From Mantamonas sphyraenae STR306 (Eukaryota > Protista > CRuMs), in assembly GCA_026936335.1 (NCBI GenBank), contig JAPMXV010000063.1, forward strand, positions 1 to 64,000: a stretch of 64,000 nucleotides of DNA. The letters are read 5' to 3'. Made by a program: the position numbers and the translations under genes. Shown here in pieces: positions 26,812 to 52,324 of the stretch (within the stretch, counting starts at the first letter, position 1; the number at the start of each line of letters is the position of its first letter). Below the pieces are notes generated by a model, which had not been told where the DNA came from, searched no databases, and saw nothing but the letters and a program-made list of their open reading frames with translations.

Positions 26812-26896
26812 TGTGGCGGAAGCAACCTTGTTCTGCATGCCCGCGCGCACCAAACCTTTTTCTCCCTCCTGCTCGTCTCGACCCGTTGCACAGACC

Positions 26897-29800
26897 ATGA
26901 GTGAGGACTCCGCTGAAGGCAGTATGGGCATGGAATCCCAGTCGGATGCCCAAGTACAGTACGAGCAAGACTCGGCCTCAAACACCAACAATGCTTCCAG
27001 TCGCCGTTCCGCAAGCAACCGCGTCGCCCCTCAGCAGCAACAACCTGCCAACCAGACCTCCGACAATTCCAACGAAGCGCTCATGGTTGCTGCCGGTGCC
27101 GCTGCCGGTGCCGCCTTTGCCGCTGCCATGGCTGAGGAGGAGCAAAACAACCGCGAAGAAGCCGACGAGGAACCCGCCGAAACAAATGCTTCCGCCGCCA
27201 CCGCCAAACCCGCCGCCAAGGATGACGTCACCATTGTGCCCATTGGACCCGTGGGTGCGGTCGAAGAAGCCAAGTAAGTGCCTGGGACCATGCCCCTATC
27301 CCCCCTTTGCCCCTTCAACTCCACCCTCCACCATGTGTCCGCCTCCAGCCCCGGAAAAACCGTTTCCTGACATCATCCACCGCGCCACCGGGTGTCGACC
27401 CAAAGACCGCCCATCAAACTGGCCGATTTGAGCAAACTCAAGGTTGGGATGGGACAGCGACGACGCAGGTACACGCGTGTGGCCACCCTTGTGCTTGTGC
27501 TCGGCCTGCTGCTTGCCGTCTGGTTGCTGGTCGGCCTGCTCTCCTTCTTCCCTCTCGTGGCCAAGTACAGTGGCACGCTGGTCATTGTGCCCACCGGGTG
27601 TGATGTCACCGTGCAAAAGGGCGATGCCAACACGGTCAGCATGGTTGGCCTGCGATCTCGTGGCGTCAGCTTTGACCTGCAGTTCAAGGCCAATCCCGCC
27701 GACGAGTTGAAGAACCTGATTGCCAAGAACCCTGACTGTGTCAACATGCCGCGACAGAGCTGTCGTCACGCGTGCCACATTGTGGTCAATGTCAAGGCTG
27801 GCACAAACCCAGACATCCAAGTGTTGCAACCCAGCAGCGACGAGGCTCCCGTGCTCAAGGTGGTGCTCAACAAGGGGGTCACTGTGGGTGACCTGCGCCT
27901 TCGTGGTCCTTCCGTGGAGTTTGAAGCTGCAGAGGCCACTGTCACCGGTGCCATCAGTGCCTGGCTCAACGCAGGACGCATCTACCTCACCGACGTCGTC
28001 TACGGCAGCGCAGACCTGCGCTCCACACGCAACTCGGTCACCGTCGTCGACACTGTGCGTCGCAATGTCACCGATCGCATCACCTATCGCAACACCGAAC
28101 ATCGTGTCTGTGTGCGTGCCGAAGGCGAGGGCCGCACCACTCCCGATCCCGATCCCTGGAGCGAATGCCCCTTCACCAACAGCTTCTACACCACACGTGC
28201 CATCTCCCTCTACGACACCAACAGGGACTTTCGCGTAGATCAGAACGAGTTCCTCGAAGGCGTGGCCAAGCTGCCCCGTTGCTGCGGCTCCTTCTGTCCC
28301 TTGCGATCGCTGTGTGGCGGCCTGGCTGCCGATGTGTTTCCCGTAGACACGTCGTCCACTGCTCGTCAGGGCATCCTCAGTGACGCCCAGTTCCTCAACA
28401 ACATCAAAGCCACCAACGACACCGCACTCATGCCTCTGTGCTTGCGCAGACTTACCACCGCCCCCACGGCCACCTCGGCCACCCAATCCTCGCGCAACCT
28501 CAAGATCATTGCCGATGGTGAGGTGCGTGTGGTGCGACCCATGCCCACGGGCAACACAGAGGCGGTGGCGCACGACTGGGCCCCCGGAGGCGCCATCCCA
28601 GGCCTCAAGCTCCTCCAGCAGGACGCCAACCGCCTTATGGAGCTGCGTGACAAGTACGGTCCTCTGGAATCCATCGAACACATCTACGTGGTCATGGATG
28701 TGCAGGCCAGCTACGGCGTTCCTGCGGGACGCTGGGTGTGGAGCACACGCGAGGTGTACATGAACCTGGATCCGGTGCATCTGCAGGCCCTCAGTGCAGG
28801 CATGCTTGTGCCCCAAACCCTCTATCTCAAGGTACGCTTCACCAACGGCTATTGCGAGGATTTCCCTCGTCTGCTTTCCAACGCCACCGCCGAGGAGACC
28901 CAGGCCTACCTCGATGCACGCCGCATCGAACAGTACACCGCCCTGCGTGACGCCCTCACGCCCCGTGGCCAGTTTTTCACGCGTGGTGTCATTGCCTACC
29001 TGCAGAGCAACCACACGCCCAGTGATCCTGCAAAGAAGATGTTTGTGCAAGACTTTGGCACGGGCGAGGTGATCATGACGGACCTCAAGGTGGGCGACCT
29101 GCAATTGACACGCATTGTCGTCTACCTCTCGCTGGGCATCGGCGGTCTGTTTGGACTGCTTGTCACCATCAGCTTCTTCATGTGCACGCGTGCACGCATG
29201 ATGCAGCTGCAGCGAGCCGCCGAGGTGAAGGAGAAGTTGGACATGCTCGAGGCTGGCATCGACCCCAAGGACGTGGACATCGATCCCGAACAGGTGGCCA
29301 AGACTCGCAGTGCCCTCTCCAACCCCTTTGTGTACCCGTTCCAGGTCATTGAGCTGTTCATCATCACTCCCCTGCGCCAGCGCATCGTCAACTCGCTCGT
29401 GCAGTTTGTCACCCAGCGCTGTGTGGTCCTCGACGCCCTCGAGCGTCGCGAGACACACAACCAGCACGTGCAGCTCGACATGGATGTGTTTGAGGCCGCC
29501 TACTCCCAGTTCTGCTACCAACAGGGGCTCACTCCCGTGGTCGGATCAGCCAACATCTCGTCCACCCTCATCAAGGAGTACGATCTCCGTGTGCGTCAGA
29601 CCAACCATCGCATGCTGCGTGGTGCACGCTGGGCGGCCGGTGAGGCTCCCTCCCAAGAGGAGGTCATGCGTCACAGCGCCGGTCTCACCCATCTGGCCGA
29701 GGAAGACACCCTGACACTGCTGAGGGAGTTCAACGACCGTTGGGTGGAACTGACTCTGAATCACAGCGATTCCATCGAGTTCAAAGGGGGCCGTCTTCGC

Positions 29801-31186
29801 TTCGAAGGAGGCCTGCGCAAGGACGACAAGGCCCACGGCCAGGCCGTCAAGGTGCGTGGCTACCGCGAGGTGTTTCAGGACTTTTGCAACGGCTTTGATC
29901 GCATCACTCCGGAGATCACAAACGAACAGCTGGCCCACTTGGGCATCAAGGTCACCAACCAAAAGGTGCGCATGATCCGTGGCCTGCGTCTCCGTGAAGT
30001 CGGCCAGGGCGAGCGCATCGACCTCAACGCAAGCTGGTACGTGCTGCAGATGATTTCCGTCATCGTGCACATGGCCATCCTCTTCCTCGTCCCGCTGCTC
30101 ATGATCAACGTGGCCCTCAGCCTCCAGTTCCTGTATGTCAACACCACAGGTCAGGGCGACACATTCACGTCGTTCGATCTCATGCAATTCCCACCCAACG
30201 TGGCTGGCAAGGACATCCTCGTCGAAACCGAAATCATCAGCCTTGTGTCGCTGGTCATGCTTGGTTTGGCCCTGCTGCGTCTCATGACCGAGTATCTGCA
30301 GCTCAACCCTGGTCAGGGTGGCATTGTGACCAAAGCCATCAACTATGCCTACGGGGCCGTGCTTCTGCTTGTGTTTTACGTCATCACGGCGTATGTGTGC
30401 GTGTTTGGCACGTGGATGCTGCTTGCCGCCCTGCTGGATCCCACCAACTTTCTGCCGCAAGGTGCAGCCGTTATGGCAGTCATTGTGCTGGGCAGCCTCA
30501 CCTACAAGAAACTCAAGGCGGCAGCACAGCTGGTGCGCAAAAAGTTCAAGGAGGCCATGAGTGCGTTTGTGAAAAAGACGCTGGACACGACCAAGAAGCT
30601 GATGGACGAGACCACCAAGGCCAGCAACGAGGTGGGCAGTGCACGTGCGGCCGATCAGGACGCCGTCAAGACCACGAGTGTGGAGGAGAGTGCACAGGAG
30701 ACCGACTTGGGCGATCTCTTCCAGATGCTCAACTTGGATGGCGACGAGAACCTGGACTACGAAGAGTTCTGCATGCTGTTTGACAAGCTGGGCTTCAACG
30801 TCAGCGACCTCAAGAAGGCGCAGATGTTTGCCTTTGCCGACAAGGATGGCAGTGGAGAGATCAGTGTGGGTGAGTTTGAATCCGCCTGGGAATACTTGGA
30901 GGAAGAAATGATGGAGGCTGCCATGGAGGGGCTGGGTCTGACCGATGCAGCAATCAGCTTCATTGTGGCCAGCCTGGTCAGCATGACGGTCCTCGTCTTT
31001 ATCTTCCTCTTCCTCGCCCTGGCCATCTGGACCAACGGTGGCTCCTTTGAGGCCGTGATCCAGACCATGCTTGTCAGTGGCACTGGTTTCGCCATGAGCG
31101 TGGCTCGTGGCCAGAGCCTTGGCGAAAGCATGTCCGACGAAGAGCTCGACGGCGCCGTCAAGGACAACGTGGCCACGCTGGGATGA
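26897..31186 (+). CDS. Large polytopic membrane protein with an extracellular domain, EF-hands and putative winged-helix repeats; exons 26897-27273 and 27406-31186
   Basis: Intron GTAAGT...CTGAC...AAAG; N-terminal TM; EF-hand loops DTNRDFRVDQNE, NLDGDENLDYEE and DKDGSGEISVGE; about 9 hydrophobic helices. Confidence 0.8.
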
Positions 31187-34100
31187 AGATCCAAGACGGT
31201 GATGGCGTGGTGCGAATACATGGCGTATTTCTGTTTTCATTGGAAAGCGTTGGTGTGTGTGTGTGTTGTTTGTGTGCTTGTGTGGTGCGCACATGGCGAA
31301 GAGCGACAGCGGTGGAGTGATGATCGGATATCGGCATTGTGTGTCGGTGGTGTCGGAGGGGAGGGAGAAGCATGTAACGGTGGCATTGCAAAGGATTAGG
31401 GGTTCTTTCCGGTCACATTTCACTCAGTTCCATATCATCCAGCCCCTCACGTCTGCTGTTCTTCCTTTGCCTGTTCTTTGCCCGGGTGACTACCGAACTG
31501 TGCTCATGCTCATCCAAACCTCTGACGAGCCAACCCAACCACTCGTCGTCCTCGTCGTCCGAAACCACTACATCTGCCGCTACTGCGCCCTGCCATGCAG
31601 GTGTCACCACCTTTAACACCGCACGCACCACATCCTGCCTTGTGCTTCCGCTCCCTGCACGGATCCTCATCACCTCTTTGCCGAGTGTGTTCACTTGATC
31701 AACAGACAGATCGTACAGTGCCTCCCGTGCAGCGTTCAAGTGGTCGGCATGCAACAGCCCATTCAGATGCTGCAACGAGCCTTCCACCGCTTCCTGAAGC
31801 TCCTTTGAGTACATGCGGTCAAGTTTGTGCGTTTTCACCTCTCGCCACACGTCCACTGCAGCGAAAACAATGCCAATGACGAGAATGGACACCGCCAACA
31901 CCACAGTGAGTGCCTCCCACCACTCATGACCTGATGTTTGTGTGCTCCCTGTCGCAAATAGCATCCCGGCCACAAGAAGCAGAACAGACTCGCACAGAAC
32001 CACGGTCTCCAGTCGGTTTTGCATGCTTGTGCGGTACGGCTGCTTGCCATATTGTACCATTGCCGCCACCCCAAGCACCAGAATGCCCACCATGGCTTGG
32101 ATGGTCGGTAGCGATGTCGCAAACACTTTCACACACACCACGGCCGCTTTGCGGAGCAGAACCATCGATTCGAACCAGTACATCTCTGGTGTAAACTTGC
32201 CAAAAATCGACGAGAAGCGTTGTACAAACGACTTCTGTGAGCGAGTCCGCACGTCGCGTCCGCTCCACATCACCGCCAGAAACAAGCACGGGATCCCAAG
32301 GACATACACAACTGCAAACACCCATGCTGCAGGGACGAGTCTGCTGTGAAGCCCCCCGTCTACCCAGCACTGCTCATTCGGTACTGCATCCATGACATAC
32401 ACACCATCGCCAATGTGTGTGCAGTCAAATACAGAGAGCACCCGGCTGCACAGCGTGATGTACAGAAAGCTCAGAGTCAGCATGATCTCGTTCATCAAAT
32501 ACCGGAACGTGTCCTGATCCACCACTTCAGCGCGTGTGAACAGCCCGGCAAACCTGTATCGCACAAGTTGCAGTGCAAAACCTATTGTCGAATCGCTGTC
32601 TGGCTCCGCACAGAGCCTCGGGTGGGCTGTCGAAAAAGCATATCCATGTGTGCGCACCCAAGAGCTGTGTACAAACTGGAGCACAACACGCAACACCAGA
32701 ACCACAGCCAGAAACGCGGGCAGCACCATGGCCAGCCAAAATTGCAGCTCATACGTCCACATATCGCCCAACGAGCACTCTGGCGCGGTGACACCCACTT
32801 CCAAGTTGCTCACTCCAAACACACTGTACACTTGCTGCACGGAACTGGGCCACTGCAAGCGAAACTCGGAGAACATGGACAGCACCTGCATGTGTGTTAC
32901 CAGAACACTACCCGTCTTGGCGAAACCAGTCACACGTGACCGTCGCACTGACGAGCGCACCCAGCCTACAAAGAGCACCAAGGCCACAATGAGCAGCAGC
33001 GCGTTGAGATTGCCAACTTGTGCTTCCTGGCATGATTCACAGCTCTTCCCAAGTCTGTAGAACCCATCCTCGCATTGACCACATAACAGACCAGTGTATC
33101 CCGCCCGGCAAGTGGAGTTCCCTCCACCCAGGCAGGCGGATAGAATTGGACATCGTGTGAAAACTAGCGACCCACCCTCGTTGCCACTTTGTGGTGGCAA
33201 AGAAACCCGGCTGGGGGACTGGTTGGACTCGTCCGCCTGCACAGTCGGCATTGGCAGGACAGGGAAGGCATGGCTCACTTGCAGGTTGGCCTGCAGGAAG
33301 GTAGAACCGAGCACGACACACACAGTCATCTACGCTTGTGCTGGCTGGCGAGGTTGGAACTGCGTTCTCCGGACACACCAGCGAAGGAGAACGCACAGAG
33401 AAGCTCACCGTCGCGTTGACACTTCCACTCCAGTGCTGGCCATCGTCCAACGACACTTCTACCCGATACAGGCCAACCGTGTGGTCTGCAGTGGACAAAA
33501 CCTCCAACTCCGAGTCCGAGACGATAGTGGGCGCAAACGTGCTTCCCATGCGAACCAGCATAGCGCCAGTGTCCACAAAACCACTCCCGCGGAGTTGCAC
33601 GCGTGTGGTGTCTCCGACAAGCTTGTTTGACGGCTGCACACTTGACACCCGTGGCTCATTCACGTACAAAAGGTCCAGGCCAAGCTGTTGGAACTGCTGC
33701 CCACCGTTCAGAGACACATACAGTGGGTACCGACCCGATTCACTTGAAGGCATCTCACACAGCAACTCGGAGGAGTTGGCGTGCAAACAGGTTGTACGGG
33801 GACCAGACAGTCCAACGCGCACAATGGCTTCTTTCGGGTCATCGAAGGAACCTCTCAGACGCACGGTGGTACCACCCGACGCGTAAGCACAAGCGGGCGT
33901 TGCACGCAACGCTGTCGGCAGAGAATACACCTTAAACAGGGTCGACGTCGCACTGAACGTCGACCCATTGTTCGTCGACACTGCCACGGCCACACTGCCC
34001 ACCATCAGACCGCTTGCAGGTGTTCTCACAACAATCTCACTCGCACTCATCACCTGTGTCACTCCACGCACATCCACCCCGCCAAACCGTACCACAGTCT

Positions 34101-37100
34101 CGTCCTTCCCACTCACATACCCACTTCCGAACACATGCACCTCCGTGCCACCACTCACCGGACCGCTGCTAGGTGTCACCCCAGTCACAATCGACCCCAC
34201 AGCTTGCACTGTCACACCAGACCCGCGTGTGTACTGCTTCCCGTTCACGCTCACCTCCACACCCGCCGTCTGCGTGCTCAATCCGTTCACGCTGCACCTG
34301 CTACGTGATCCGTTCACCATTTCACAGTCGTACTCGTTCTCCCCTACACGAACACGCATCACACTGCCAAACCCATCCCATCCTTGCACATCCACGACAC
34401 ACACAAACGGCAATGCTGTCGCAACCACCGCCGGCGTCACTCTGCTCACTGTTGGTTGTGTGTACAACAGCAGCCGTGTCGTTCCCTCCACATACTGTTG
34501 TCCGTTCAGAGCCACATACACACTCGCGTTCACCTTGCCCACGCCAGCTCCCAACACAGGGCTCTCCACACGAACCAAGCTGCTGCTCACGCGTGTGCCC
34601 ACAAGCTCCCCACTGCTCCACCCGGTCCCGTTCAACACCACACGCACCGTGTCCCCCGTGGTCACACTTCCGAACGACCCCACCAGACTCACTGTTGTCG
34701 ACTCACTCCCCACAACTCCTCCTTGTGGTACCGTGCTTGCAACCACCCCTTCCCCTTCTCCGTACACCACAAATGTCGCCCCAGTCGCACTGAACGTCGA
34801 CCCATTGTTCGTCGACACTGCCACGGCCACACTGCCCACCATCAGACCGCTTGCAGGTGTTCTCACAACAATCTCACTCGAACTCATCACCTGTGTCACT
34901 CCACGCACATCCACCCCGCCAAACCGTACCACAGTCTCGTCCTTCCCACTCACATACCCACTTCCGAACACATGCACCTCTGTGCCACCACTCACCGGAC
35001 CGCTGCTAGGTGTCACCCCAGTCACAATCGACCCCACAGCTTGCACTGTCACACCAGACCCGCTTGTATACTGCTTCCCGTTCACGCTCACCTCCACACC
35101 CGCCGTCTGCGTGCTCAATCCGTTCACGCTGCACCTGCTACGTGATCCGTTCACCATTTCACAGTCGTACTCGTTCTCCCCTACACGAACACGCATCACA
35201 CTGCCAAACCCATCCCATCCTTGCACATCCACGACACACACAAACGGCAATGCTGTCGCAACCACCGCCGGCGTCACACTGCTCACTGTTGGTTGTGTGT
35301 ACAACAGCAGCCGTGTCGTTCCCTCCACATACTGTTGTCCGTTCAGAGCCACATACACACTCGCGTTCACCTTGCCCACGCCAGCTCCCAACACGGGGCT
35401 CTCCACACGAACCGAGCTGCTGCTCACGCGTGTGCCCACAAGCTCCCCACTGCTCCATCCGGTCCCGTTCAACACCACACGCACCGTGTCCCCCGTGGTC
35501 ACACTTCCGAACGACCCCACCAGACTCACTGTCGTCGACTCTTTCCCCACAACTCCTCCTTGTGGTACCGTGCTTGCAACCACCCCTTCCCCTTCTCCGT
35601 ACACCACAAATGTCGCCCCAGTTGCACTGAACGTCGACCCATTGTTCGTCGACACTGCCACGGTCACACTGCCCACCATCAGACCGCTTGCAGGTGTTCT
35701 CACAACAATCTCACTCGCACTCATCACCTGTGTCACTCCACGCACATCCACCCCACCAAACCGTACCACAGTCTCGTCCTTCCCACTCACATACCCACTT
35801 CCGAACACATGCACCTCCGTGCCACCACTCACCGAACCGCTCCTAGGTGTCACCCCAGTCACAATCGACCCCACAGCTTGCACTGTCACACCAGACCCGC
35901 GTGTGTACTGCTTCCCGTTCACGCTCACCTCCACACCCGCCGTCTGCGTGCTCAATCCGTTCACGCTGCACCTGCTACGTGATCCGTTCACCATTTCACA
36001 GTCGTACTCGTTCTCCCCTACACGCACACGCATCACATTGCCAAACCCATCCCATCCTTGCACATCCACGACACACACAAACGGCAATGCTGTCGCAACC
36101 ACCGCCGGCGTCACTCTGCTCACTGTTGGTTGTGTGTACAACAGCAGCCGTGTCGTTCCCTCCACATACTGTTGTCCGTTCAGAGCCACATACACACTCG
36201 CGTTCACCTTGCCCACGCCAGCTCCCAACACGGGGCTCTCCACACGAACCAAGCTGCTGCTCACGCGTGTGCCCACAAGCTCCCCACTGCTCCACCCGGT
36301 CCCGTTCAACACCACACGCACCGTGTCCCCCGTGGTCACACTTCCGAACGACCCCACCAGACTCACTGTCGTCGACTCTTTCCCCACAACTCCTCCTTGT
36401 GGTACCGTGCTTGCAACCACCCCTTCCCCTTCTCCGTACACCACAAATGTCGCCCCAGTCGCACTGAACGTCGACCCATTGTTCGTCGACACTGCCACGG
36501 TCACACTGCCCACCATCAGACCGCTTGCAGGTGTTCTCACAACAATCTCACTCGCACTCATCACCTGTGTCACTCCACGCACATCCACCCCGCCAAACCG
36601 TACCACAGTCTCGTCCTTCCCACTCACATACCCACTTCCGAACACATGCACCTCCGTGCCACCACTCACCGGACCGCTCCTAGGTGTCACCCCAGTCACA
36701 ATCGACCCCACAGCTTGCACTGTCACACCAGACTCGCTTGTGTACTGCTTCCCGTTCACGCTCACCTCCACACCCGCCGTCTGCGTGCTCAATCCGTTCA
36801 CGCTGCACCTGCTACGTGATCCGTTCACCATTTCACAGTCGTACTCGTTCTCCCCTACACGAACACGCATCACATTGCCAAACCCATCCCATCCTTGCAC
36901 ATCCACGACACACACAAACGGCAATGCTGTCGCAACCACCGCCGGCGTCACACTGCTCACTGTTGGTTGTGTGTACAACAGCAGCCGTGTCGTTCCCTTC
37001 ACATACTGTTGTCCGTTCAGAGCCACATACACACTCGCGTTCACCTTGCCCACGCCAGCTCCCAACACAGGGCTCTCCACACGAACCAAGCTGCTGCTCA

Positions 37101-39336
37101 CGCGTGTGCCCACAAGCTCCCCACTGCTCCACCCGGTCCCGTTCAACACCACACGCACCGTGTCCCCCGTGGTCACACTTCCGAACGACCCCACCAGACT
37201 CACTGTCGTCGACTCACTCCCCACAACTCCTCCTTGTGGTACCGTGCTTGCAACCACCCCTTCCCCTTCTCCGTACACCACAAATGTCGCCCCAGTCGCA
37301 CTGAACGTCGACCCATTGTTCGTCGACACTGCCACGGTCACACTGCCCACCATCAGACCGCTTGCAGGTGTTCTCACAACAATCTCACTCGAACTCATCA
37401 CCTGTGTCACTCCACGCACATCCACCCCACCAAACCGTACCACAGTCTCGTCCTTCCCACTCACATACCCACTTCCGAACACATGCACCTCCGTGCCACC
37501 ACTCACCGGACCGCTGCTAGGTGTCACTCCACTCACCGCAGCTCTCACCGCCGTAACGCGTACGGTGCTCCCAAGTGAGTACTGCTGTCCACCGTTCAAT
37601 GACACGCTCACAGCATGACTACCAGCTTCCAGACTTACTTCGGCGCTGATGAGGCTGTTGTTCACATACCCGCCGCTCGCTTGTATCGTTCCAACCTGCA
37701 CGACGATTGCTCCCGTGTCCACGAATCCCGTGCCCAGTACAGACAGCTGCTGAGTCCTTCTTTCCGCCACAGTCTTTGGAGAAAGATCATTCACCGTTGG
37801 CAGAACACTCACGTTCACACGCATGTCGGAACTTGAATCCACTCTGCCGTACACCTCCCCGTTTGTCGTCAATCCGATGCCATACTCGCCGCTGTCAACA
37901 TCGGCAAACTTCACTGTCCTACACCGCACCTCAGTGTACGAAACATACGTGCAGCTCACCTCTTGCACACTGCCCACCCTGCATCGGATCTTCCCTGTGC
38001 TGTTGAAACCAACGCCCCGTACCGTCAGCTCGGTGCCTCCTAGCACACTTCCCCATCGTGGTGTCACCGTGTCTGCGCGAAACAATGTCAATCTTCGTGG
38101 TCCTGCGTACTGCTGTCCGTTCAAGGACACGTACACGTCCACATTTCCAACCATCCCCGTGGCGTTCATCTCCACACGTATGATTGCACTGTTCACAAAC
38201 TCTGCCTTTGGCTCAACCATCAACCCGTCTTCTGCTCGCACCACTTGAACGCGAAGTCCACTCCCAGTGTCTGCGAAAAATTTTCCACTCGCAGGAATCA
38301 ACTCCACACCACCACTTCCATCCGGCATACTTGGCATCGTGTTCGGGACGACCCCTCCCAGCCCATGGTCAGCAAACACCTGTCCTGTCGCACTGGCACC
38401 ACTTTCAAACTGCACCCCATTCGGTGCCACCTGCACTTGCATCTGCGTCACCTGACCATTGCTCACCGCCACAACACCCTCCAGCAATCCCAACCGGGTT
38501 TGCACCGAGCCACCCGTTCCAGTTCCTGCGCTGCCCACAAACACACCGTCTCGCTCTTGGACCACCAAACCCCCAACAAGCACTCGCACTTTTGGTATGT
38601 CTTGTGTTTCCGTCAGCCCAGCACCACTGATGTTCACGGTTGCTTCTGCGTTGCGCTGAATGGCCTGTGGGAACGCCACCATGCTACCCGTCACGTTGTA
38701 CACATACACCACGCTTCCTGTGCTCTCATACTGTTGCCCATTCATCGTCACACTCACAGAGTACTGCCCAATCTTCGTCAAAGAGCCGGTGGTGCACTGC
38801 AACCTCGTGCTGTCCACCACTGCTGCCATCATGTATGCCACACTCCCGTCTGGCCCTGTCAAGCGACATCGTGTCACAACTGAAACGTCATTTCCCACGC
38901 TTCCGTTGACCATTCCACTTCCAGATACGTTCAGAAGAGTGCCCCCCGAGGTCGGCCCGCTCTTTGGCCGAACAGACACAAAGGACACGGTGTACACCAG
39001 AAATGAGACGTTGGCCATTGAATACACGCTTTCTGCGCGTAGCTGGACCACTTCCTGCCCATCAACAAGGTGAGATAGAGGCGGTGTCCGGCAGACAATG
39101 GACGAGCTCGTCAAAGGGTCGCAATCAACCAACGCCACCTGGCCACCATCTTTTGCAACCAAGGTGAGGTTGACTCCTGCAAGGTGCAAGTTGATGCCAG
39201 AAACCGTGATAGATGTGTTTCCAGTGACTGGTCCGAGCGTGGGCTGTACAGATTGGACCACAGGAAAGGTGATGTTGCAGGCCGTGTTGCCTTCGCCCAG
39301 AGATGTGCTTCCAGGTGCGCAAGGCGTGCAACTTAA
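31005..39336. repeat. Left arm of a large inverted repeat (partner 42326-50671)
   Basis: Paired coordinates sum to a constant (39336+42326, 37618+44044 and 33968+47694 = 81662; 31413+50248 = 81661). Near-identical apart from the arm-specific modules, scattered SNPs and a 15-bp indel in the 3' UTR. Confidence 0.95.
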
Positions 39337-40727
39337 ACTGCCACTGTATGCAGTGTACGAGTTAGCGGGGCATATAGTGCAGTTGGGAAGCCCTGTTGGG
39401 ATCGCCGTGAGGGCCTGCAGTGTTTTCGTTCCGGGAGGACAACCATCAACCGCCTCGGTCAAGAAGGGGCCACCAAAGCGAATCGTGCCCCCAACGAATA
39501 CACGCCCTGACGGCGAAACGGACACACCCGTTACCGTTTCTTCCTGTGAGACGCCCCACTGTGTTGAGGTTTGCAAAGAGAAGGTCTCCATGTCAACACG
39601 AGCAAGAAAGTTGTCAAAGTCACCCACGTTCGGACCCCATGCACTTCCTTGTGTGCCTCCAGTGACAAGTGCAGTATTTGACGACTCAAGGGCCAACTTT
39701 CGTGGTTGGTCATTGCTTGACGAGCCGAATAAGAGAGATTTCTCGGTTGACCCAGTTGTTGCGTTGAGCAGGAGCAGGACAACATCAGACCCCCCCAGAG
39801 GGGCGTATCCTGATACACCCGCGCTTGTGCTGTAGGCATGCACAATCCCAAGTTGCGTGGGAAGTACTAAAGCATTGAAATCTGCTTGAGCGGACCCCAG
39901 CTGGCGAGAAATTACTACTTCACCGTTGTGCGCTGCAAGAACGGCCACCCAAGTGTCGCTGGAGCCAATGGACGTGCCCCCGTTGAAATTCCCGCTCGTG
40001 GTTCCGCTGAGAAGGATGCGATCATTCATATCAAAGGCAATGCTTTGCGGGGTGCTCGATCCCGTTGCTGATACTTGAACTTGCCAAACGATGGAGCCGT
40101 GAACATCCAATAATGCCACGAAAATGGGATTATTACCAGTGAATGGTTTCCCTACGACTGCCACACGCGTGCCGGCACCGTTCAACGCAATTCCTGCCAG
40201 CTGGTCAAAGGACGCTGTTCCCATCTGAGTCCACCACATAATGGTTGAACCATTCGCCGCCAAACGCGCTACCACATAGTCAGAGAATCCGGCATTGGTG
40301 GAACCTGCGTAGACACCAGATGATTCGCCAGCGACGATAACGTCGCCGGATGGCAGGGACACACAATCTCGTACGGTGTCGTCTTCTGTGGTCCCGAACT
40401 GGCTTGTTCGCATCAGGGTACCGTTGTATGCGAACATGGACACGTACATATCCTTCTTCCCGACACTGGTGGTTCCTGGGAACACGGCACCGCTTCCTGT
40501 GAGAGTGCGAGCTGGTAAGGGAGGGTCTGTGCACGGCACCAAATCGGACATCTCCGGAGACACCTACCCGTCGTCCCGCAAACAGCGACCAAGTCTTGCT
40601 GGGCCGATGGCACACTTGTTTCTGCGCTGGATCCCCATGTGGCCGTCCATAGTGCAAGGGTGAGCGGAACGACCGTCAGCAGTGTCACAACTAGCTCGAG
40701 ACGTAGTTTCGAATTCGGACGTTTCAT
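31413..40727 (-). CDS. Giant surface receptor L: signal peptide, SBBP-like propeller head, IPT/TIG repeat stalk (module A), Cys-rich region, ~7-TM C-terminal domain; intron 40567-40497; +1 frameshift at 33188-33190
   Basis: Exon 1 MKRPNSKLRLELVVTLLTVVPLTLA... spliced (GTAGGT...ACAG, phase 1) to ORF 33037-40563. P.SGP..GGT.V.V.G.G IPT motifs. ORF 31413-33329 supplies the TM part, almost identical to the right copy. Confidence 0.85.
33946..37530 (-). repeat. 837-bp (279-aa) tandem repeat array, 4 full units plus a partial unit, each with module A
   Basis: Shadow ORFs recur every 837 bp (34173, 35010, 35847, 36684). Module ATALPFVCVVDVQGWDGF...VGSIV occurs four times. Confidence 0.95.
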
Positions 40728-40915
40728 TGTCAAAACGGCCGCACCGCACCTTGTCCTGTTCGAACACAACGCATGCACGCACGGTCAACACCCCATTCAC
40801 CACCCGCACCATGTAGTTGCTTTCACCTCATACGTCCCATTCAAGATCGTGGCAGCACATGTCAACATCCCGTCCCAATGCAATTTGCGCCGAGCTCACA
40901 ACTTTTTTGTTCTCC
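40728..40915. promoter_or_regulatory. Putative bidirectional promoter of the two receptor genes, containing the palindrome axis (~40831)
   Basis: 188 bp between divergent ATGs at 40727 (-) and 40916 (+), each opening a signal peptide. Position-based inference only. Confidence 0.65.
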
Positions 40916-43900
40916 ATGAAGTTGCAACCGAACTTGTTCCTTGTGCTTGTGTTTGCCCCATGTGTCCTTTGTGCTTGGACAAAAGTGCTACCGTACACGG
41001 CGAACCAAATCCCGCCAGCTTCTGTGCTGAGTATGGTGCTTGACAGGACCAACGGCAGCCTCGTGCACACGGCATCGCCTTTTTTGGGTACGTGGGCCGT
41101 GCACTTGAAAACACTTGCGCGCCATTGTTGTCGCTGACTCAGAACCATCGACACAGACTTCGGAACAAACAATGACTTGAGTGGCTCTAAAATCACATCT
41201 TTCACGCTAGACGGTGATATTGTGCGCGTTGTGGCGTTTCCCAGCGACTACGGGGAGTTCGCCTCCAGCGTTGCTTCTCTTCCGAACGGCGAGCTCCTCG
41301 TGTGTGGCACCACCTCTGCTTCAAAAACAACGACTTTTGATGGCTCCACTGCTTCGGTCCCATATGTACAAAAGGATCTTTTCATGGCCAGACTGTTTGC
41401 CAATGGCAGCAAAGCCTGGGTTGCCTTTGCGAACTGCTCTGGCTGTGGACAGCTCAGCCATACCGTCATTGATACATCGAGCACTCGAGCTGTGCATTGT
41501 GGTGTTCAAGGCAAAGAGCAACCTTTACTCCCAAACATTGGAGGAGATTTGGACATCCTTTGCATTTGCCGGGCTCTAGATGGAACACTGCTCTGGCGCG
41601 CTGTGGTCGGCAGTGTCAACACTGATAATGTTGGTAGTGTCATCCTCGATCACGATGGAAATGTGCTGCTTCTTTCCAACTCTGGATCATCAGCATACCT
41701 TCGTCGTCTCAACATATCCACAGGAGAGTTACTCTCTGCGCAGGAGCTACTGGCGGCTGATGGTTCGCCATTTGCGTGGTCGAGCTTGACTGAGCCTCTG
41801 AGCCCGCCAATGTCTTCATCCTTGATCCATGGTGAAAATTCAAGCATCGTGTACATCGGCGGGAGGGTGAACATTGAGAGCCGCCAAGTGGCAATTCTGA
41901 TCAAACGAAACGCAAACGCGACGTTGTGGACAACGCTCTATCCAGAGAGGTTGCAGAGTAGTGGCTTTCACACATTGTCGCAAACGAATAGTTTTGTGTA
42001 TGCTGCCGGGTTCTACGGTCCGACAGCATCGCTTACCCTACAATCAACCCAGGCAATTGTGTGCCAGATTGCAAAGCATGACGGCCGCATCAACGATTGT
42101 CGCAGAACGAGTCCATCGCCTTCATTCTACGCAGCTTCGCTTCCAGTCGACGATGTTCTCTTTGCAGCTGGGGGGTGGCGAACCGACGAGCTACGGCCAG
42201 TTCTTCGTCGTGCTTGGGATGCCTGTGAAGTTGGAACAACGGCAAACGGTGGACCAAACGCTTCCCCATCACCCTCTACATGCACCCCATGCCCTTCCAA
42301 CGCCTACAGCAACGTGACTGGCGCCTTAAGTTGCACGCCTTGCGCACCTGGAAGCACATCTCTGGGTGAAGGGAACACGGCCTGCAACATCACCTTTCCT
42401 GTGGTCCAATCTGTACAGCCCACGCTCGGACCAGTCACTGGAAACACATCTATCACGGTTTCCGGCATCAACTTGCACCTTGCAGGAGTCAACCTCACCT
42501 TGGTTGCCAAAGATGGTGGCCAGGTGGCGTTGGTTGATTGCGACCCTTTGACGAGCTCGTCCATTGTCTGCCGTACACCGCCTCTATCTCACCTTGTTGA
42601 TGGGCAGGAAGTGGTTCAGCTACGCGCAGAAAGCGTGTATTCAATGGCCAACGTCTCATTTCTGGTGTACACCGTGTCCTTTGTGTCTGTTCGGCCAAAG
42701 AGCGGGCCGACCTCGGGGGGCACTCTTCTGAACGTATCTGGAAGTGGAATGGTCAACGGAAGCGTGGGAAATGACGTTTCAGTTGTGACACGATGTCGCT
42801 TGACAGGGCCAGACGGGAGTGTGGCATACATGATGGCAGCAGTGGTGGACAGCACGAGGTTGCAGTGCACCACCGGCTCTTTGACGAAGATTGGGCAGTA
42901 CTCTGTGAGTGTGACGATGAATGGGCAACAGTATGAGAGCACAGGAAGCGTGGTGTATGTGTACAACGTGACGGGTAGCATGGTGGCGTTCCCACAGGCC
43001 ATTCAGCGCAACGCAGAAGCAACCGTGAACATCAGTGGTGCTGGGCTGGTGGAAACACAAGACATACCAAAAGTGCGCGTGCTTGTTGGGGGTTTGGTGG
43101 TCCAAGAGCGAGACGGTGTGTTTGTGGGCAGCGCAGGAACTGGAACGGGTGGCTCGGTGCAAACCCGGTTGGGATTGCTGGAGGGTGTTGTGGCGGTGAG
43201 CAATGGTCAGGTGACGCAGATGCAAGTGCAGGTGGCACCGAATGGGGTGCAGTTTGAAAGTGGTGCCAGTGCGACAGGACAGGTGTTTGCTGACCATGGG
43301 CTGGGAGGGGTCGTCCCGAACACGATGCCAAGTATGCCGGATGGAAGTGGTGGTGTGGAGTTGATTCCTGCGAGTGGAAAATTTTTCGCAGACACTGGGA
43401 GTGGACTGCGCGTTCAAGTGGTGCGAGCAGAAGACGGGTTGATGGTTGAGCCAAAGGCAGAGTTTGTGAACAGTGCAATCATACGTGTGGAGATGAACGC
43501 CACGGGGATGGTTGGAAATGTGGACGTGTACGTGTCCTTGAACGGACAGCAGTACGCAGGACCACGAAGATTGACATTGTTTCGCGCAGACACGGTGACA
43601 CCACGATGGGGAAGTGTGCTAGGAGGCACCGAGCTGACGGTACGGGGCGTGGGTTTCAACAGCACAGGGAAGATCCGATGCAGGGTGGGCAGTGTGCAAG
43701 AGGTGAGCTGCACGTATGTTTCGTACACTGAGGTGCGGTGTAGGACAGTGAAGTTTGCCGATGTTGACAGCGGCGAGTATGGCATCGGAGTGACGACAAA
43801 CGGGGAGGTGTACGGCAGAGTGGATTCAAGTTCCGACATGCGTGTGAACGTGAGTGTTCTGCCAACGGTGAATGATCTTTCTCCAAAGACTGTGGCGGAA

Positions 43901-46900
43901 AGAAGGACTCAGCAGCTGTCTGTACTGGGCACGGGATTCGTGGACACGGGAGCAATCGTCGTGCAGGTTGGAACGATACAAGCGAGCGGCGGGTATGTGA
44001 ACAACAGCCTCATCAGCGCCGAAGTAAGTCTGGAAGCTGGTAGTCATGCTGTGAGCGTGTCATTGAACGGTGGACAGCAGTACTCACTTGGGAGCACCGT
44101 ACGCGTTACGGCGGTGAGAGCTGCGGTGAGTGGAGTGACACCTAGCAGCGGTCCGGTGAGTGGTGGCACAGAGGTGCATGTGTTCGGAAGTGGGTATGTG
44201 AGTGGGAAGGACGAGACTGTGGTACGGTTTGGCGGGGTGGATGTGCGTGGAGTGACACAGGTGATGAGTGCGAGTGAGATTGTTGTGAGAACACCTGCAA
44301 GCGGTCTGATGGTGGGCAGTGTGACCGTGGCAGTGTCGACGAACAATGGGTCGACGTTCAGTGCGACTGGGGCGACATTTGTGGTGTACGGAGAAGGGGA
44401 AGGGGTGGTTGCAAGCACGGTACCACAAGGAGGAGTTGTGGGGAAAGAGTCGACGACAGTGAGTCTGGTGGGGTCGTTCGGAAGTGTGACCACGGGGGAC
44501 ACGGTGCGTGTGGTGTTGAACGGGACCGGGTGGAGCAGTGGGGAGCTTGTGGGCACACGCGTGAGCAGCAGCTTGGTTCGTGTGGAGAGCCCCGTGTTGG
44601 GAGCTGGCGTGGGCAAGGTGAACGCGAGTGTGTATGTGGCTCTGAACGGACAACAGTATGTGAAGGGAACGACACGGCTGCTGTTGTACACACAACCAAC
44701 AGTGAGCAGTGTGACGCCGGCGGTGATCGCATCGGGGCTGGAACGCCTGGTGCGTGTGGACGGCCACGGGTTTTTGGATCTAGGAGCGACGGCAATGTCA
44801 TTCTCGGGAAGTACAAGCAAAGGGTGCACGTACATTTCGCCAACGCGAGTGGAATGCAGTATTGGGCCGCTGGAGGATGCAACGGGCAGTGTGTCTGTGG
44901 CCCTGAATGGGGTTCAGTTTGTGGCTGGGGAAGGAGCGGTGATGCAGGTGGTTAGCGGGGTGGTGAGTGGAGTGACACCTAGCAGCGGTCCGGTGAGTGG
45001 TGGCACGGAGGTGCATGTGTTCGGAAGTGGGTATGTGAGTGGGAAGGACGAGACTGTGGTACGGTTTGGCGGGGTGGATGTGCGTGGAGTGACACAGGTG
45101 ATGAGTGCGAGTGAGATTGTTGTGAGAACACCTGCAAGCGGTCTGATGGTGGGCAGTGTGACCGTGGCAGTGTCGACGAACAATGGGTCGACGTTCAGTG
45201 CGACTGGGGCGACATTTGTGGTGTACGGAGAAGGGGAAGGGGTGGTTGCAAGCACGGTACCACAAGGAGGAGTTGTGGGGAGTGAGTCGACGACAGTGAG
45301 TCTGGTGGGGTCGTTCGGAAGTGTGACCACGGGGGACACGGTGCGTGTGGTGTTGAACGGGACCGGGTGGAGCAGTGGGGAGCTTGTGGGCACACGCGTG
45401 AGCAGCAGCTTGGTTCGTGTGGAGAGCCCCGTGTTGGGAGCTGGCGTGGGCAAGGTGAACGCGAGTGTGTATGTGGCTCTGAACGGACAACAGTATGTGA
45501 AGGGAACGACACGGCTGCTGTTGTACACACAACCAACAGTGAGCAGTGTGACGCCGGCGGTGATCGCATCGGGGCTGGAACGCCTGGTGCGTGTGGACGG
45601 CCACGGGTTTTTGGATCTAGGAGCGACGGCAATGTCATTCTCGGGAAGTACAAGCAAAGGGTGCACGTACATTTCGCCAACGCGAGTGGAATGCAGTATT
45701 GGGCCGCTGGAGGATGCAACGGGCAGTGTGTCTGTGGCCCTGAATGGGGTTCAGTTTGTGGCTGGGGAAGGAGCGGTGATGCAGGTGGTTAGCGGGGTGG
45801 TGAGTGGAGTGACACCCAGCAGCGGTCCGGTGAGTGGTGGCACGGAGGTGCATGTGTTCGGAAGTGGGTATGTGAGTGGGAAGGACGAGACTGTGGTACG
45901 GTTTGGTGGGGTGGATGTGCGTGGAGTGACACAGGTGATGAGTTCGAGTGAGATTGTTGTAAGAACACCTGCAAGCGGTCTGATGGTGGGCAGTGTGACC
46001 GTGGCAGTGTCGACGAACAATGGGTCGACGTTCAGTGCGACTGGGGCGACATTTGTGGTGTACGGAGAAGGGGAAGGGGTGGTTGCAAGCACGGTACCAC
46101 AAGGAGGAGTTGTGGGGAGTGAGTCGACGACAGTGAGTCTGGTGGGGTCGTTCGGAAGTGTGACCACGGGGGACACGGTGCGTGTGGTGTTGAATGGGAC
46201 CGGATGGAGCAGTGGGGAGCTTGTGGGCACACGCGTGAGCAGCAGCTCGGTTCGTGTGGAGAGCCCTGTGTTGGGAGCTGGCGTGGGCAAGGTGAACGCA
46301 AGTGTGTATGTGGCTCTGAACGGACAACAGTATGTGGAGGGAACGACACGGCTGCTGTTGTACACACAACCAACAGTGAGCAGTGTGACGCCGGCGGTGA
46401 TCGCATCGGGGCTGGAACGCCTGGTGCGTGTGGACGGCCACGGGTTGTTGGATCTAGGAGCGACGGCAATGTCATTCTCGGGAAGTACAAGCAAAGGGTG
46501 CACGTACATTTCGCCAACGCAAGTGGAATGCAGTATTGGGCCGCTGGAGGATGCAACGGGCAGTGTGTCTGTGGCCCTGAATGGGGTTCAGTTTGTGGCT
46601 GGGGAAGGAGCGGTGATGCAGGTGGTTAGCGGGGTGGTGAGTGGAGTGACACCCAGCAGCGGTCCGGTGAGTGGTGGCACGGAGGTGCATGTGTTCGGAA
46701 GTGGGTATGTGAGTGGGAAGGACGAGACTGTGGTACGGTTTGGCGGGGTGGATGTGCGTGGAGTGACACAGGTGATGAGTGCGAGTGAGATTGTTGTGAG
46801 AACACCTGCAAGCGGTCTGATGGTGGGCAGTGTGACCGTGGCAGTGTCGACGAACAATGGGTCGACGTTCAGTGCGACTGGGGCGACATTTGTGGTGTAC

Positions 46901-49900
46901 GGAGAAGGGGAAGGGGTGGTTGCAAGCACGGTACCACAAGGAGGAGTTGTGGGGAGTGAGTCGACGACAGTGAGTCTGGTGGGGTCGTTCGGAAGTGTGA
47001 CCACGGGGGACACGGTGCGTGTGGTGTTGAACGGGACCGGATGGAGCAGTGGGGAGCTTGTGGGCACACGCGTGAGCAGCAGCTCGGTTCGTGTGGAGAG
47101 CCCTGTGTTGGGAGCTGGCGTGGGCAAGGTGAACGCGAGTGTGTATGTGGCTCTGAACGGACAACAGTATGTGAAGGGAACGACACGGCTGCTGTTGTAC
47201 ACACAACCAACAGTGAGCAGTGTGACGCCGGCGGTGATCGCATCGGGGCTGGAACGCCTGGTGCGTGTGGACGGCCACGGGTTTTTGGATCTAGGAGCGA
47301 CGGCAATGTCATTCTCGGGAAGTACAAGCAAAGGGTGCACGTACATTTCGCCAACGCAAGTGGAATGCAGTATTGGGCCGCTGGAGGATGCAACGGGCAG
47401 TGTGTCTGTGGCCCTGAATGGGGTTCAGTTTGTGGCTGGGGAAGGAGCGGTGATGCAGGTGGTTAGCGGGGTGGTGAGTGGAGTGACACCCAGCAGCGGT
47501 CCGGTGAGTGGTGGCACGGAGGTGCATGTGTTCGGAAGTGGGTATGTGAGTGGGAAGGACGAGACTGTGGTACGGTTTGGTGGGGTGGATGTGCGTGGAG
47601 TGACACAGGTGATGAGTGCGAGTGAGATTGTTGTGAGAACACCTGCAAGCGGTCTGATGGTGGGCAGTGTGACCGTGGCAGTGTCGACGAACAATGGGTC
47701 GACGTTCAGTGCGACGTCGACCCTGTTTAAGGTGTATTCTCTGCCGACAGCGTTGCGTGCAACGCCCGCTTGTGCTTACGCGTCGGGTGGTACCACCGTG
47801 CGTCTGAGAGGTTCCTTCGATGACCCGAAAGAAGCCATTCTGCGCGTTGGACTGTCTGGTCCCCGTACAACCTGTTTGCATGCCAACTCCTCCGAGTTGC
47901 TGTGTGAGATGCCTTCAAGTGAATCGGGTCGGTACCCACTGTATGTGTCTCTGAACGGTGGGCAGCAGTTCCAACAGCTTGGCCTGGACCTTTTGTACGT
48001 GAATGAGCCACGGGTGTCAAGTGTGCAGCCGTCAAACAAGCTTGTCGGAGACACCACACGCGTGCAACTCCGCGGGAGTGGTTTTGTGGACACTGGCGCT
48101 ATGCTGGTTCGCATGGGAAGCACGTTTGCGCCCACTATCGTCTCGGACTCGGAGTTGGAGGTTTTGTCCACTGCAGACCACACGGTTGGCCTGTATCGGG
48201 TAGAAGTGTCGTTGGACGATGGCCAGCACTGGAGTGGAAGTGTCAACGCGACGGTGAGCTTCTCTGTGCGTTCTCCTTCGCTGGTGTGTCCGGAGAACGC
48301 AGTTCCAACCTCGCCAGCCAGCACAAGCGTAGATGACTGTGTGTGTCGTGCTCGGTTCTACCTTCCTGCAGGCCAACCTGCAAGTGAGCCATGCCTTCCC
48401 TGTCCTGCCAATGCCGACTGTGCAGGCGGACGAGTCCAACCAGTCCCCCAGCCGGGTTTCTTTGCCACCACAAGTGGCAACGAGGGTGGGTCGCTAGTTT
48501 TCACACGATGTCCAATTCTATCCGCCTGCCTGGGTGGAGGGAACTCCACTTGCCGGGCGGGATACACTGGTCTGTTATGTGGTCAATGCGAGGATGGGTT
48601 CTACAGACTTGGGAAGAGCTGTGAATCATGCCAGGAAGCACAAGTTGGCAATCTCAACGCGCTGCTGCTCATTGTGGCCTTGGTGCTCTTTGTAGGCTGG
48701 GTGCGCTCGTCAGTGCGACGGTCACGTGTGACTGGTTTCGCCAAGACGGGTAGTGTTCTGGTAACACACATGCAGGTGCTGTCCATGTTCTCCGAGTTTC
48801 GCTTGCAGTGGCCCAGTTCCGTGCAGCAAGTGTACAGTGTGTTTGGAGTGAGCAACTTGGAAGTGGGTGTCACCGCGCCAGAGTGCTCGTTGGGCGATAT
48901 GTGGACGTATGAGCTGCAATTTTGGCTGGCCATGGTGCTGCCCGCGTTTCTGGCTGTGGTTCTGGTGTTGCGTGTTGTGCTCCAGTTTGTACACAGCTCT
49001 TGGGTGCGCACACATGGATATGCTTTTTCGACAGCCCACCCGAGGCTCTGTGCGGAGCCAGACAGCGATTCGACAATAGGTTTTGCACTGCAACTTGTGC
49101 GATACAGGTTTGCCGGGCTGTTCACACGCGCTGAAGTGGTGGATCAGGACACGTTCAGGTATTTGATGAACGAGATCATGCTGACTCTGAGCTTTCTGTA
49201 CATCACGCTGTGCAGCCGGGTGCTCTCTGTATTTGACTGCACACACATTGGCGATGGTGTGTATGTCATGGATGCAGTACCGAATGAGCAGTGCTGGGTA
49301 GACGGGGGGCTTCACAGCAGACTCGTCCCTGCAGCATGGGTGTTTGCAGTTGTGTATGTCCTTGGGATCCCGTGCTTGTTTCTGGCGGTGATGTGGAGCG
49401 GACGCGACGTGCGGACTCGCTCACAGAAGTCGTTTGTACAACGCTTCTCGTCGATTTTTGGCAAGTTTACACCAGAGATGTACTGGTTTGAATCGATGGT
49501 TCTGCTCCGCAAAGCGGCCGTGGTGTGTGTGAAAGTGTTTGCGACATCGCTACCGACCATCCAAGCCATGGTGGGCATTCTGGTGCTTGGGGTGGCGGCA
49601 ATGGTACAATATGGCAAGCAGCCGTACCGCACAAGCATGCAAAACCGACTGGAGACCGTGGTTCTGTGCGAGTCTGTTCTGCTTCTTGTGGCCGGGATGC
49701 TATTTGCGACAGGGAGCACACAAACATCAGGTCATGAGTGGTGGGAGGCACTCACTGTGGTGTTGGCGGTGTCCATTCTCGTCATTGGCATTGTTTTCGC
49801 TGCAGTGGACGTGTGGCGAGAGGTGAAAACGCACAAACTTGACCGCATGTACTCAAAGGAGCTTCAGGAAGCGGTGGAAGGCACGTTGCAGCATCTGAAT

Positions 49901-50248
49901 GGGCTGTTGCATGCCGACCACTTGAACGCTGCACGGGAGGCACTGTACGGTCTGTCTGTTGATCAAGTGAACACACTCGGCAAAGAGGTGATGAGGATCC
50001 GTGCAGGGAGCGGAAGCACAAGGCAGGATGTGGTGCGTGCGGTGTTAAAGGTGGTGACACCTGCATGGCAGGGCGCAGTAGCGGCAGATGTAGTGGTTTC
50101 GGACGACGAGGACGACGAGTGGTTGGGTTGGCTCGTCAGAGGTTTGGATGAGCATGAGCACAGTTCGGTAGTCACCCGGGCAAAGAACAGGCAAGGGAAG
50201 AACAGCAGACGTGAGGGGCTGGATGATATGGAACTGAGTGAAATGTGA
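40916..50248 (+). CDS. Giant surface receptor R: signal peptide, divergent propeller-like head, IPT/TIG repeat stalk (module B), Cys-rich region, ~7-TM C-terminal domain; exons 40916-41087 and 41157-50248
   Basis: MKLQPNLFLVLVFAPCVLCA signal; intron GTACGT...GCTGAC...ACAG (69 nt, phase 1) joins in frame to the uninterrupted 3023-codon ORF. Confidence 0.88.
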
Positions 50249-50671
50249 CCGGAAAGAACCCCTAATCCTTTGCAATGCCACCGTTACATGCTTCTCCCTC
50301 CCCTCCGACACCACCGACACACAATGCCGATATCCGATCAACACCGTGAAACTTTTGCCTCCACCGCTGTCGCTCTTCGCCATGTGCGCACCATACAAGC
50401 ACACAAACAACACACACACACACCAACGCTTTCCAATGAAAACAGAAATACGCCATGTATTCGCACCACGCCATCACCGTCTTGGATCCTCATCCCAGCG
50501 TGGCCACGTTGTCCTTTACGGCGCCGTCGAGCTCTTCGTCGGACATGCTTTCGCCAAGGCTCTGGCCACGAGCCACGCTCAAGGCGAAACCAGTGCCACT
50601 GACAAGCATGGTCTGGATCACGGCCTCAAAGGAGCCACCGTTGGTCCAGATGGCCACGGCGAGGAAGAGGA
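42326..50671. repeat. Right arm of the large inverted repeat (partner 31005-39336)
   Basis: Reverse complement of the left arm, including the 3' UTR and the last ~180 bp of the EF-hand membrane gene. Confidence 0.95.
44132..47716 (+). repeat. 837-bp tandem repeat array, 4 full units plus a partial unit, each with module B
   Basis: Shadow ORFs recur at 44530, 45367, 46204 and 47041. Module IASGLERLVRVDGHG...VVSGVV occurs four times. Confidence 0.95.
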
Positions 50672-51110
50672 CTGCAGCACTGCACGCCTGTTGATCCATG
50701 TCACGGCCGAGAAGGGTGAGGCAGAGGGCCATGTCGCCCTGGGAGAGTGGAATGTTGCCCAGAGCGAGCTGAATCTGTCGGACCAGCGTGGCCATTGTGC
50801 CATGGCAGACCACAACACGCGCCTGCAGAGTCATGAGGTCGGGGATGTTGTCAATGGGATGCTCGTTGGCCAAGTTGTGCATGTGGTTCAGCAGTGCCGT
50901 GTGTTTCTTCTTGTTGCTGTGCATGCGCTCGCTCTTGCGTCAATACGTCCAGCCACTGCCCATAACACCATCTGGCAACTTATTCGTCATCTTCACGCCT
51001 GCTTTCTTCCGTGCGCTGTTGTCTCCGTTCTTGGCCCTCCTGGCCCGTTTGCTCGACGTTCCTGTCTCCGTGCCATTGCCGGTCGTGACCCTGCGCCTGC
51101 GCTGCCTCCT
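50490..51110 (-). pseudogene. Chimeric fragment: a piece of the telomere-adjacent gene family fused in frame to a duplicate of the EF-hand membrane protein C-terminus
   Basis: 51110-50672 matches 1650-2075 and 2899-3195, with TGA at 50940-50942 where the paralog has TGG. 50671-50490 matches 31005-31186. Confidence 0.85.
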
Positions 51111-52193: not shown

Positions 52194-52287
52194 GCTTGTC
52201 TTTTCTTGACTTTGCGGGTGAGTGCTTTTCGCAATTGTTGGTCGAACCGGCGCAATCGCAATCATCCTTTTAAAGCTGGCGCTCCTC

Positions 52288-52324
52288 GGAGGATTCCCGA
52301 GAAAAGATGGATCGAGAAGATTCG
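52288..52324. promoter_or_regulatory. Putative heat-shock elements in the BAG/DnaJ bidirectional promoter
   Basis: ATCgaGAAgaTTC at 52311-52323 and GAGgaTTCccGAG at 52289-52301 fit inverted nGAAn arrays with mismatches. Confidence 0.5.

Follow-up and report, generated by a model that had tools for sequence, protein, structure and literature searches.

Several described systems share parts of their organization with a palindromic locus in the first 64 kb of contig JAPMXV010000063.1 (C63, 225,577 bp) of the protist Mantamonas sphyraenae STR306, a 64,000-bp stretch that we call the window; two giant receptor genes diverge there from a 188-bp spacer. One is the Dictyostelium tgrB1/tgrC1 pair (PMC13648343, PMC12745789), which is likewise head-to-head with a common promoter and IPT/TIG ectodomains and belongs to a large family with conversion and rearrangement, but encodes a ligand and a receptor without propeller or multi-pass tail, and for which strain polymorphism and binding have been shown. 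In the clustered protocadherins of fugu (PMC1852091), adjacent surface paralogs have membrane-proximal parts that are >99% identical and divergent N-terminal recognition parts, but these are vertebrate tandem arrays of single-pass cadherins with a proven recognition role, whereas the propeller/IPT/multi-pass proteins of the unicellular M. sphyraenae come in pairs, some of them inverted, and have an additional island of divergence in stalk modules A and B. The human Y palindrome P6 (PMC3723533) has large arms kept similar by arm-to-arm conversion round a unique spacer, with inversion being rare, and Y palindromes may also be alike in having no pairing homolog; they differ in carrying whole identical genes in arms of >99.9% identity, whereas the spacer in the window holds the 5′ ends of both genes, so that each gene is part unique and part shared. 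The flip/flop region of Saccharomyces with its Centroid-gene flanks (PMC9731477) is also an inverted repeat of homogenised paralogs that could invert by homologous recombination, and it does so over evolutionary time, being unchanged in ~53,800 mitoses; there the inversion has been demonstrated between strains and carries 15 whole genes with it, whereas we see no second orientation, and a flip would only swap stalk modules. Finally, the DUF7630/PF06011 (fungal Pkd2/FLC-like) proteins of protists, algae, sponges and cnidarians have the same membrane module with varied ectodomains, whereas the window proteins, which score below the PF06011 cut-off, combine it with an SBBP head and a long IPT stalk in a paired and probably converted arrangement. 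The literature searched contains no description of an SBBP head with a long IPT stalk, or of pairing and conversion in this family. We consider it probable that the window pair represents old paralogs homogenised by arm-to-arm gene conversion, with the heads and module A/B remaining as islands of divergence.

The genome of M. sphyraenae, a diploid protist of the CRuMs group, was sequenced on PacBio RSII and Illumina platforms and assembled with FALCON (PMC10492846); the assembly searched here has 25,061,354 bp in 78 contigs. Telomere repeats are present at the start of the window, and the locus is 31-51 kb from the telomere. Self-BLAST aligns the two inverted arms at 98-99% identity around a unique 2989-bp centre (39337-42325), and the start codons at 40727 (−) and 40916 (+) place the genes head-to-head, both as described in the original prediction, which was made from the sequence alone. 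The principal features are as follows.

31005-39336 (−): left palindrome arm, with stalk, tail and 3′ flank of the left gene (self-comparison)
42326-50671 (+): right palindrome arm (self-comparison)
31413-40727 (−): left receptor gene, with signal peptide, SBBP propeller, Cys-rich unit, IPT/TIG stalk with four A modules, DUF7630 and multi-pass tail
40916-50248 (+): right receptor gene, 3087 codons and unbroken, with the left-gene layout but four B modules
40728-40915 (no strand): divergent promoter spacer, 188 bp, transcribed both ways
39337-40727 (−): left head, a seven-bladed SBBP beta-propeller whose best paralog in the genome is ~30% identical
40916-42325 (+): right head, a strongly diverged SBBP-like propeller without a close copy in the genome
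40497-40567 (−): left intron, 71 nt, phase 1, spliced in RNA
41088-41156 (+): right intron, 69 nt, phase 1, spliced in RNA
37537-39336 (−): inner shared segment, left copy
42326-44125 (+): inner shared segment, right copy
33947-37536 (−): left array of four 837-bp units and a fifth partial unit
44126-47715 (+): right array of four 837-bp units and a fifth partial unit
36700-36936, 35863-36099, 35026-35262 and 34189-34425 (−): module A copies
44726-44962, 45563-45799, 46400-46636 and 47237-47473 (+): module B copies
48449-50245 (+): DUF7630 Cys-rich unit and PF06011-like multi-pass membrane module (left copy 33191-31416)
33188-33190 (−): frame-breaking insertion of one base in a homopolymer, probably a long-read error that escaped polishing

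Each 837-bp array unit combines 600 bp shared between the arms with a 237-bp module for one IPT-like domain, which is of type A in the left arm and of type B in the right. The predicted near-identity of the arms holds overall but not for these four modules, A and B being only 36% identical in DNA and 27-29% in protein. The copies of the inner shared segment have 12 differences per 1800 bp, nine of them synonymous. The prediction of two genes of about 3000 residues similarly fits the right gene, but in the assembly the left gene carries an additional base in a run of T residues and stops at 33037 after 2539 codons. A lone one-base indel within a near-identical tract is also present in three of the five other pairs described below (C25, C15 and C55), and the left frame break probably reflects uncorrected long-read error where short reads map ambiguously.

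Two patterns in the arms are informative about their history. First, variants in the 600-bp shared blocks are patchy over both arms, with means of 8.4 differences within an arm and 9.25 between arms, while the modules are sorted purely, four A on the left and four B on the right (the chance of such a split is 2 in 70). This combination fits non-crossover conversion that halts at diverged sequence; with crossovers in these blocks A and B would become mixed, and the pure arrays argue against them. Second, divergence is greater in the non-coding outer flank (6/408) than in the tail (7/2532; p=0.005), suggesting that the coding part was homogenised after duplication. In other palindromes conversion is frequent and inversion rare (PMC3723533; PMC9731477).

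To evaluate the assembly and its expression, read contigs of DNA runs X1 and X2, which may be the assembly's own data, and of run X3 were compared with 39300-44960. A single 3049-bp contig in both X1 and X2 spans 39307-42355 with zero differences and extends into each arm, which rules out a misjoin of the head-to-head core; short reads leave the number and order of the repeat units unproven. Misassembly of two haplotypes or a fold-back read artefact might be suspected for a heterozygous diploid sequenced with error-prone long reads (PMC10492846), the more so as single-base breaks recur in duplicated tracts. However, in each of two libraries that one short-read contig links both heads to both arms, the reads contain both heads and, at most of the arm differences, both alleles, and modules A and B have near-equal depth in X2 (70.1 and 68.4), and we regard an artefact as extremely improbable. 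Run X3 is listed as ‘DNA?’ but is RNA because its contigs skip both introns, in agreement with the prediction of one phase-1 intron per head. Its depth is 46.5 for the left head and 27.5 for the right; at the level of a whole culture both genes are spliced and expressed together, and both promoters are active.

The original prediction also proposed that crossover between the inner shared segments flips both heads and the promoter, exchanging head/stalk pairings. The geometry does permit this, as a flip at these segments would keep both frames, and inverted repeats can flip in eukaryotes without a dedicated recombinase nearby, as in the yeast flip/flop region (PMC9731477) and the MAT inversion of Ogataea (PMC5720833). 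Were inversion through the inner shared 2.4 kb recurrent, four head/stalk combinations should coexist in the population. The RNA contig, however, carries the left-arm allele at 9/9 independent clusters of the 12 inner-segment differences (p=0.004), whereas DNA contigs carry it at 11/18. Out to 43790, then, the left alleles go with the left head, which is the more strongly expressed. Module B accounts for a share of 0.36-0.39 in RNA (0.36-0.46 when corrected by the DNA share of 0.42-0.49), against 0.37, the right-head share, expected if the pairing is fixed and 0.50 if it is evenly mixed; contig depth is a poor measure, so these phasing, share and copy-depth readings are indirect. The A/B mixing expected from crossovers in the 600-bp blocks is also not seen. 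Together the left alleles, the B share and the pure arrays speak against active head/stalk swapping. Both genes being expressed, orientation changes no expression state, and no recombinase family was matched among 20 open reading frames (ORFs) of the window, as the prediction had stated (the rest of the genome was not searched). Of the features of a programmed switch the locus has the geometry, but it shows neither a dedicated recombinase in the window nor short crossover sites, arm identity merely breaking off, nor expression that depends on orientation, and the indirect phasing and module shares favour a single orientation; a flipping switch is unlikely, and in its recurrent form very unlikely.

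The identity of the arms ends within the Cys-rich domain, and the order of domains in both genes is a propeller head, a Cys-rich unit, a long IPT/TIG stalk, DUF7630 and the membrane module. Protein searches used exon 2 of the spliced models, with the two frames of the left gene scanned separately. For the left head there are matches to Pfam SBBP and to bacterial SBBP proteins, the CylK propeller among them, and the SBBP-like signal of the right head is weaker; a single-sequence fold of the right head had a predicted confidence (pLDDT) of 34 and was not used. Word-based protein searches returned only distant bacterial SBBP proteins or nothing useful. The two heads nevertheless align colinearly from end to end (21% identity, E 9e-9), and their introns lie 386 (left) and 389 (right) codons ahead of the arm junction in the same phase. 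This colinearity and the same-phase intron at a near-equal position point to a common descent of the heads: they are very different, as had been noted, but are distant relatives of one fold rather than unrelated cassettes.

These observations bear on whether the palindrome instead arose by a recent inverted duplication of the left gene and its 3′ flank, with the head and one IPT module subsequently replaced by cassette shuffling. Three features flank or overlap the arms.

27392-31186 (+): left neighbour, an EF-hand membrane protein gene whose final ~60 codons are within the left arm
50490-50671 (−): truncated copy of the 3′ end of the EF-hand neighbour, at the outer end of the right arm
50680-51104 (+): fragment of a genome-wide subtelomeric repeat adjoining the right arm

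The right arm terminates in a partial duplicate of the left neighbour (its last ~60 codons), next to the subtelomeric repeat, so this outer end was copied from the left. Identity boundaries also fall near domain edges, and in a related palindrome (C25, below) just past the predicted signal peptide, as cassette replacement would have it. However, no donor copy of either head is present in the assembly, the best matches being ~30% (left) and 26-31% (right) identical, and pieces of 36900-44800 searched as DNA have no copy in the assembly outside the window, the repeat unit included. Moreover, most other family heads examined are without an intron at this position whereas both window heads have one at nearly the same place, and module B would have to spread to exactly four right-arm units and to none on the left. 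We therefore regard a recent duplication with cassette replacement as unlikely. A further idea, that the right junction mirrors the left end of C63 itself, was not supported, as the repeat piece is 84-89% like its own left copies and up to 90-92% like those of C29, C50 and C76.

Read depth raises the question of whether both homologs carry the locus. The centre has a depth of 29.4 in X1 and 21.8 in X2, which is 0.51 and 0.53 of the depth of an unrelated control contig, C70 (~57 in X1 and ~41, in two bins, in X2), although this is a single control identified by a chance 21-22-base match. The ratio of inner arm to centre depth is 1.84 and 1.63, compared with 1.83 expected for two copies in all, and the centre shows no variant in three runs. 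The reported Illumina coverage of 115x (PMC10492846) fits the higher, C70-like depth provided both libraries are included. It is fairly likely that the locus is present on one homolog only (hemizygous). The control sequence (C70:194182-197991) encodes an IPT/TIG-repeat protein with acidic and lysine-rich inserts, in which the two DNA runs disagree at one base, as would fit a heterozygous diploid locus. Two loose read-contig ends that were considered as near-identical paralogs proved to be chance 21-22-base matches to this unrelated IPT gene.

A half-depth centre without variants, with arm ratios that fit two copies, is what would be expected if two long-balanced divergent alleles of one recognition gene, for self/non-self or prey recognition, had been captured side by side, with the other homolog differing. 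The assembly includes 6.4 Mb of associate contigs (PMC10492846), allelic recombination would likewise homogenise all but the selected parts, and the Dictyostelium tgrBC locus has both duplication and inversion (PMC12745789). The depth calibration depends, however, on one control contig and a short match, and the same pattern in tandem pairs and housekeeping palindromes (below) requires no such history; we think capture of alleles unlikely. It is similarly improbable that the locus belongs to a system of haplotype-specific receptor diversification, in which constant stalk/channel bodies would be recombination handles for variable propeller tips, loci would differ between homologs or strains, and occasional inversions or crossovers would make new pairings for self/non-self or prey recognition.

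The pattern is not restricted to the window. About 100 places in the genome match the tail, in line with the further paralogs that had been anticipated, and 12 of the 27 closest form six adjacent pairs with tails that are 95-100% identical. Besides the window pair there are thus five adjacent pairs with such tails and divergent heads, two of them inverted (C25 and C15) and three tandem (C31, C58 and C55). In C31 and C58 the heads have a synonymous divergence (dS) of 0.1-2.8 with a lower nonsynonymous divergence (dN) and the stalks a dS of ~0.04 or less, and in C25 the dS of the heads is saturated. Tracts that are near-identical at synonymous sites adjoin tracts of high dS, as regional gene conversion predicts. 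Positive selection on recently duplicated heads was considered and rejected, as dS exceeds dN. The locus does look like a site of receptor diversification, as originally suggested.

Among these pairs, C25:130667-149155 is an 18.5-kb tail-to-tail palindrome with two-propeller heads. Its copies are 99.5% identical over the upstream 2.5 kb, which contains a duplicated ORF, and over the predicted signal peptide; identity stops where the mature propeller begins and resumes at 99.4% in the end of the stalk and the membrane module, and the cytoplasmic tails differ. In the other adjacent pairs (C15:305621-310955, C31:265903-278120, C58:349158-360089 and C55:328055-342640) stalks or tails are near-identical and heads divergent, although those in tandem might in principle represent allelic haplotypes that the assembly placed one after the other. 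C45 holds an older head-to-head pair whose identity is 67% along its whole length. Inverted duplication in this genome extends beyond receptors: at C3:346885-351445 two RPL8 genes with identical profile scores lie head-to-head, providing a housekeeping control for palindrome formation, and there is a weaker GATA-like pair on C56, both pairs being confirmed by position.

We infer arm-to-arm conversion as the best explanation of the locus, alongside the structure, splicing, co-expression and domain content observed. Two presumably old head-to-head paralogs of giant propeller/IPT/multi-pass receptors would share the 188-bp promoter and be expressed together. Their arms would pair and exchange sequence by non-crossover gene conversion, making the stalk, membrane module and 3′ flank ~99% identical, and the putatively ligand-contacting propeller and one IPT domain would be either too diverged for copying or held apart by selection. 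The cell would make two receptors with different tips and one signalling body, the left head fixed to the A stalk and the right head to the B stalk, and a flip would be a possible rare evolutionary accident and not a working switch. Several points weigh against this explanation. The base composition at third codon positions (GC3) is higher in the putatively converted tracts of 4/4 pairs, but the same step, with a low-GC3 head, is present in the C72 gene, which is unpaired. The assignment of variants to copies relies on a consensus polished within repeats. The equal number (four) and length (79 codons) of modules A and B are not accounted for by drift alone. Lastly, the RNA evidence consists of contig depth and majority alleles, with which a flipped minority of up to ~1/4 is compatible.

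Both genes have the same multi-pass tail, which is 100% identical in the part compared. Ahead of it DUF7630 scores above its cut-off, and the membrane module has eight clearly hydrophobic helices, with ~9 long ones in its model (pLDDT 93.5). Comparison of the module with PDB gave no significant match (best Z 7.8) and no match to G protein-coupled receptors (GPCRs), although a missing match does not exclude a fold, and predicted structures of DUF7630/PF06011 proteins do match it (Atlas TM-score up to 0.83; 6436 relatives); these relatives carry varied ectodomains in algae, ciliates, sponges and cnidarians. PF06011 is matched by 26/64 homologs, and the window protein falls below the cut-off, as does, narrowly, its paralog C15b (28.1 versus 28.5). 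PF06011 is the fungal TRP-like family that includes fission yeast Pkd2. The nearest relatives are in Mantamonas plastica and Anaeramoeba; M. plastica transcripts are 27-44% identical and none matches the heads. Judged by its domains alone, the most likely function of the pair is in surface or bacterial-prey sensing or gripping, coupled to a Pkd2/FLC-like module. The tail also limits the comparison with tgrB1/tgrC1 drawn in the original prediction. Tgr proteins are single-pass and not near-identical to each other. The layout and the IPT domains do correspond, but both window genes have the same tail of eight or more helices and do not form a single-pass ligand and receptor, and the window pair is not a tgrB1/tgrC1-type member.

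Several other features of the genome and window are of note. Frames of 3,800-10,900 codons with many SBBP propellers are present at C25:180446-207529, C67:7370-24082, C26:135544-164094, C1:65949-87193 and C30:25453-42093; those on C25 and C67 have matching hit patterns and may be recent duplicates. Family members with similar scores at C43:86508 and C26:245342 (frames 1263/1263), and at C54:330728 and C61:308443 (6823/6812), are possible dispersed recent duplicates. Copies of the subtelomeric repeat in both orientations lie deep in the longest contig (C29:80606-96976), possibly as a result of a chromosome-end fusion or a misjoin. A subtelomeric SBBP and Cys-rich gene without an IPT stalk is at 4294-6123 (−) in the window, and SBBP-like matches are also found near contig ends on C47 and C64. 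The window further contains leucine-rich-repeat genes at 6615-8480 (−), with ~11 tandem 84-bp units, and at 24304-27018 (−), a tandem array with 4.9 copies of a 42-bp unit (98% matches) at 17499-17702, and, to the right of the palindrome at 51234-59470, genes for BAG domain, DnaJ, peptidase C78 (UFSP-like), RmlD-like and COG7 proteins.

A known process that acts repeatedly on an undescribed receptor family in a deep-branching protist gives the best account of the locus. Receptor evolution by constant body and variable tip, familiar from immune receptors and protocadherins of vertebrates, is thus seen at six loci of this family in a lineage close to the base of Amorphea. A large family of Pkd2/FLC-like membrane proteins whose propeller heads are of bacterial type also emerges as a set of candidate surface or prey sensors. 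If hemizygosity is true, the locus would be a candidate for a balanced recognition polymorphism in a single-celled predator.

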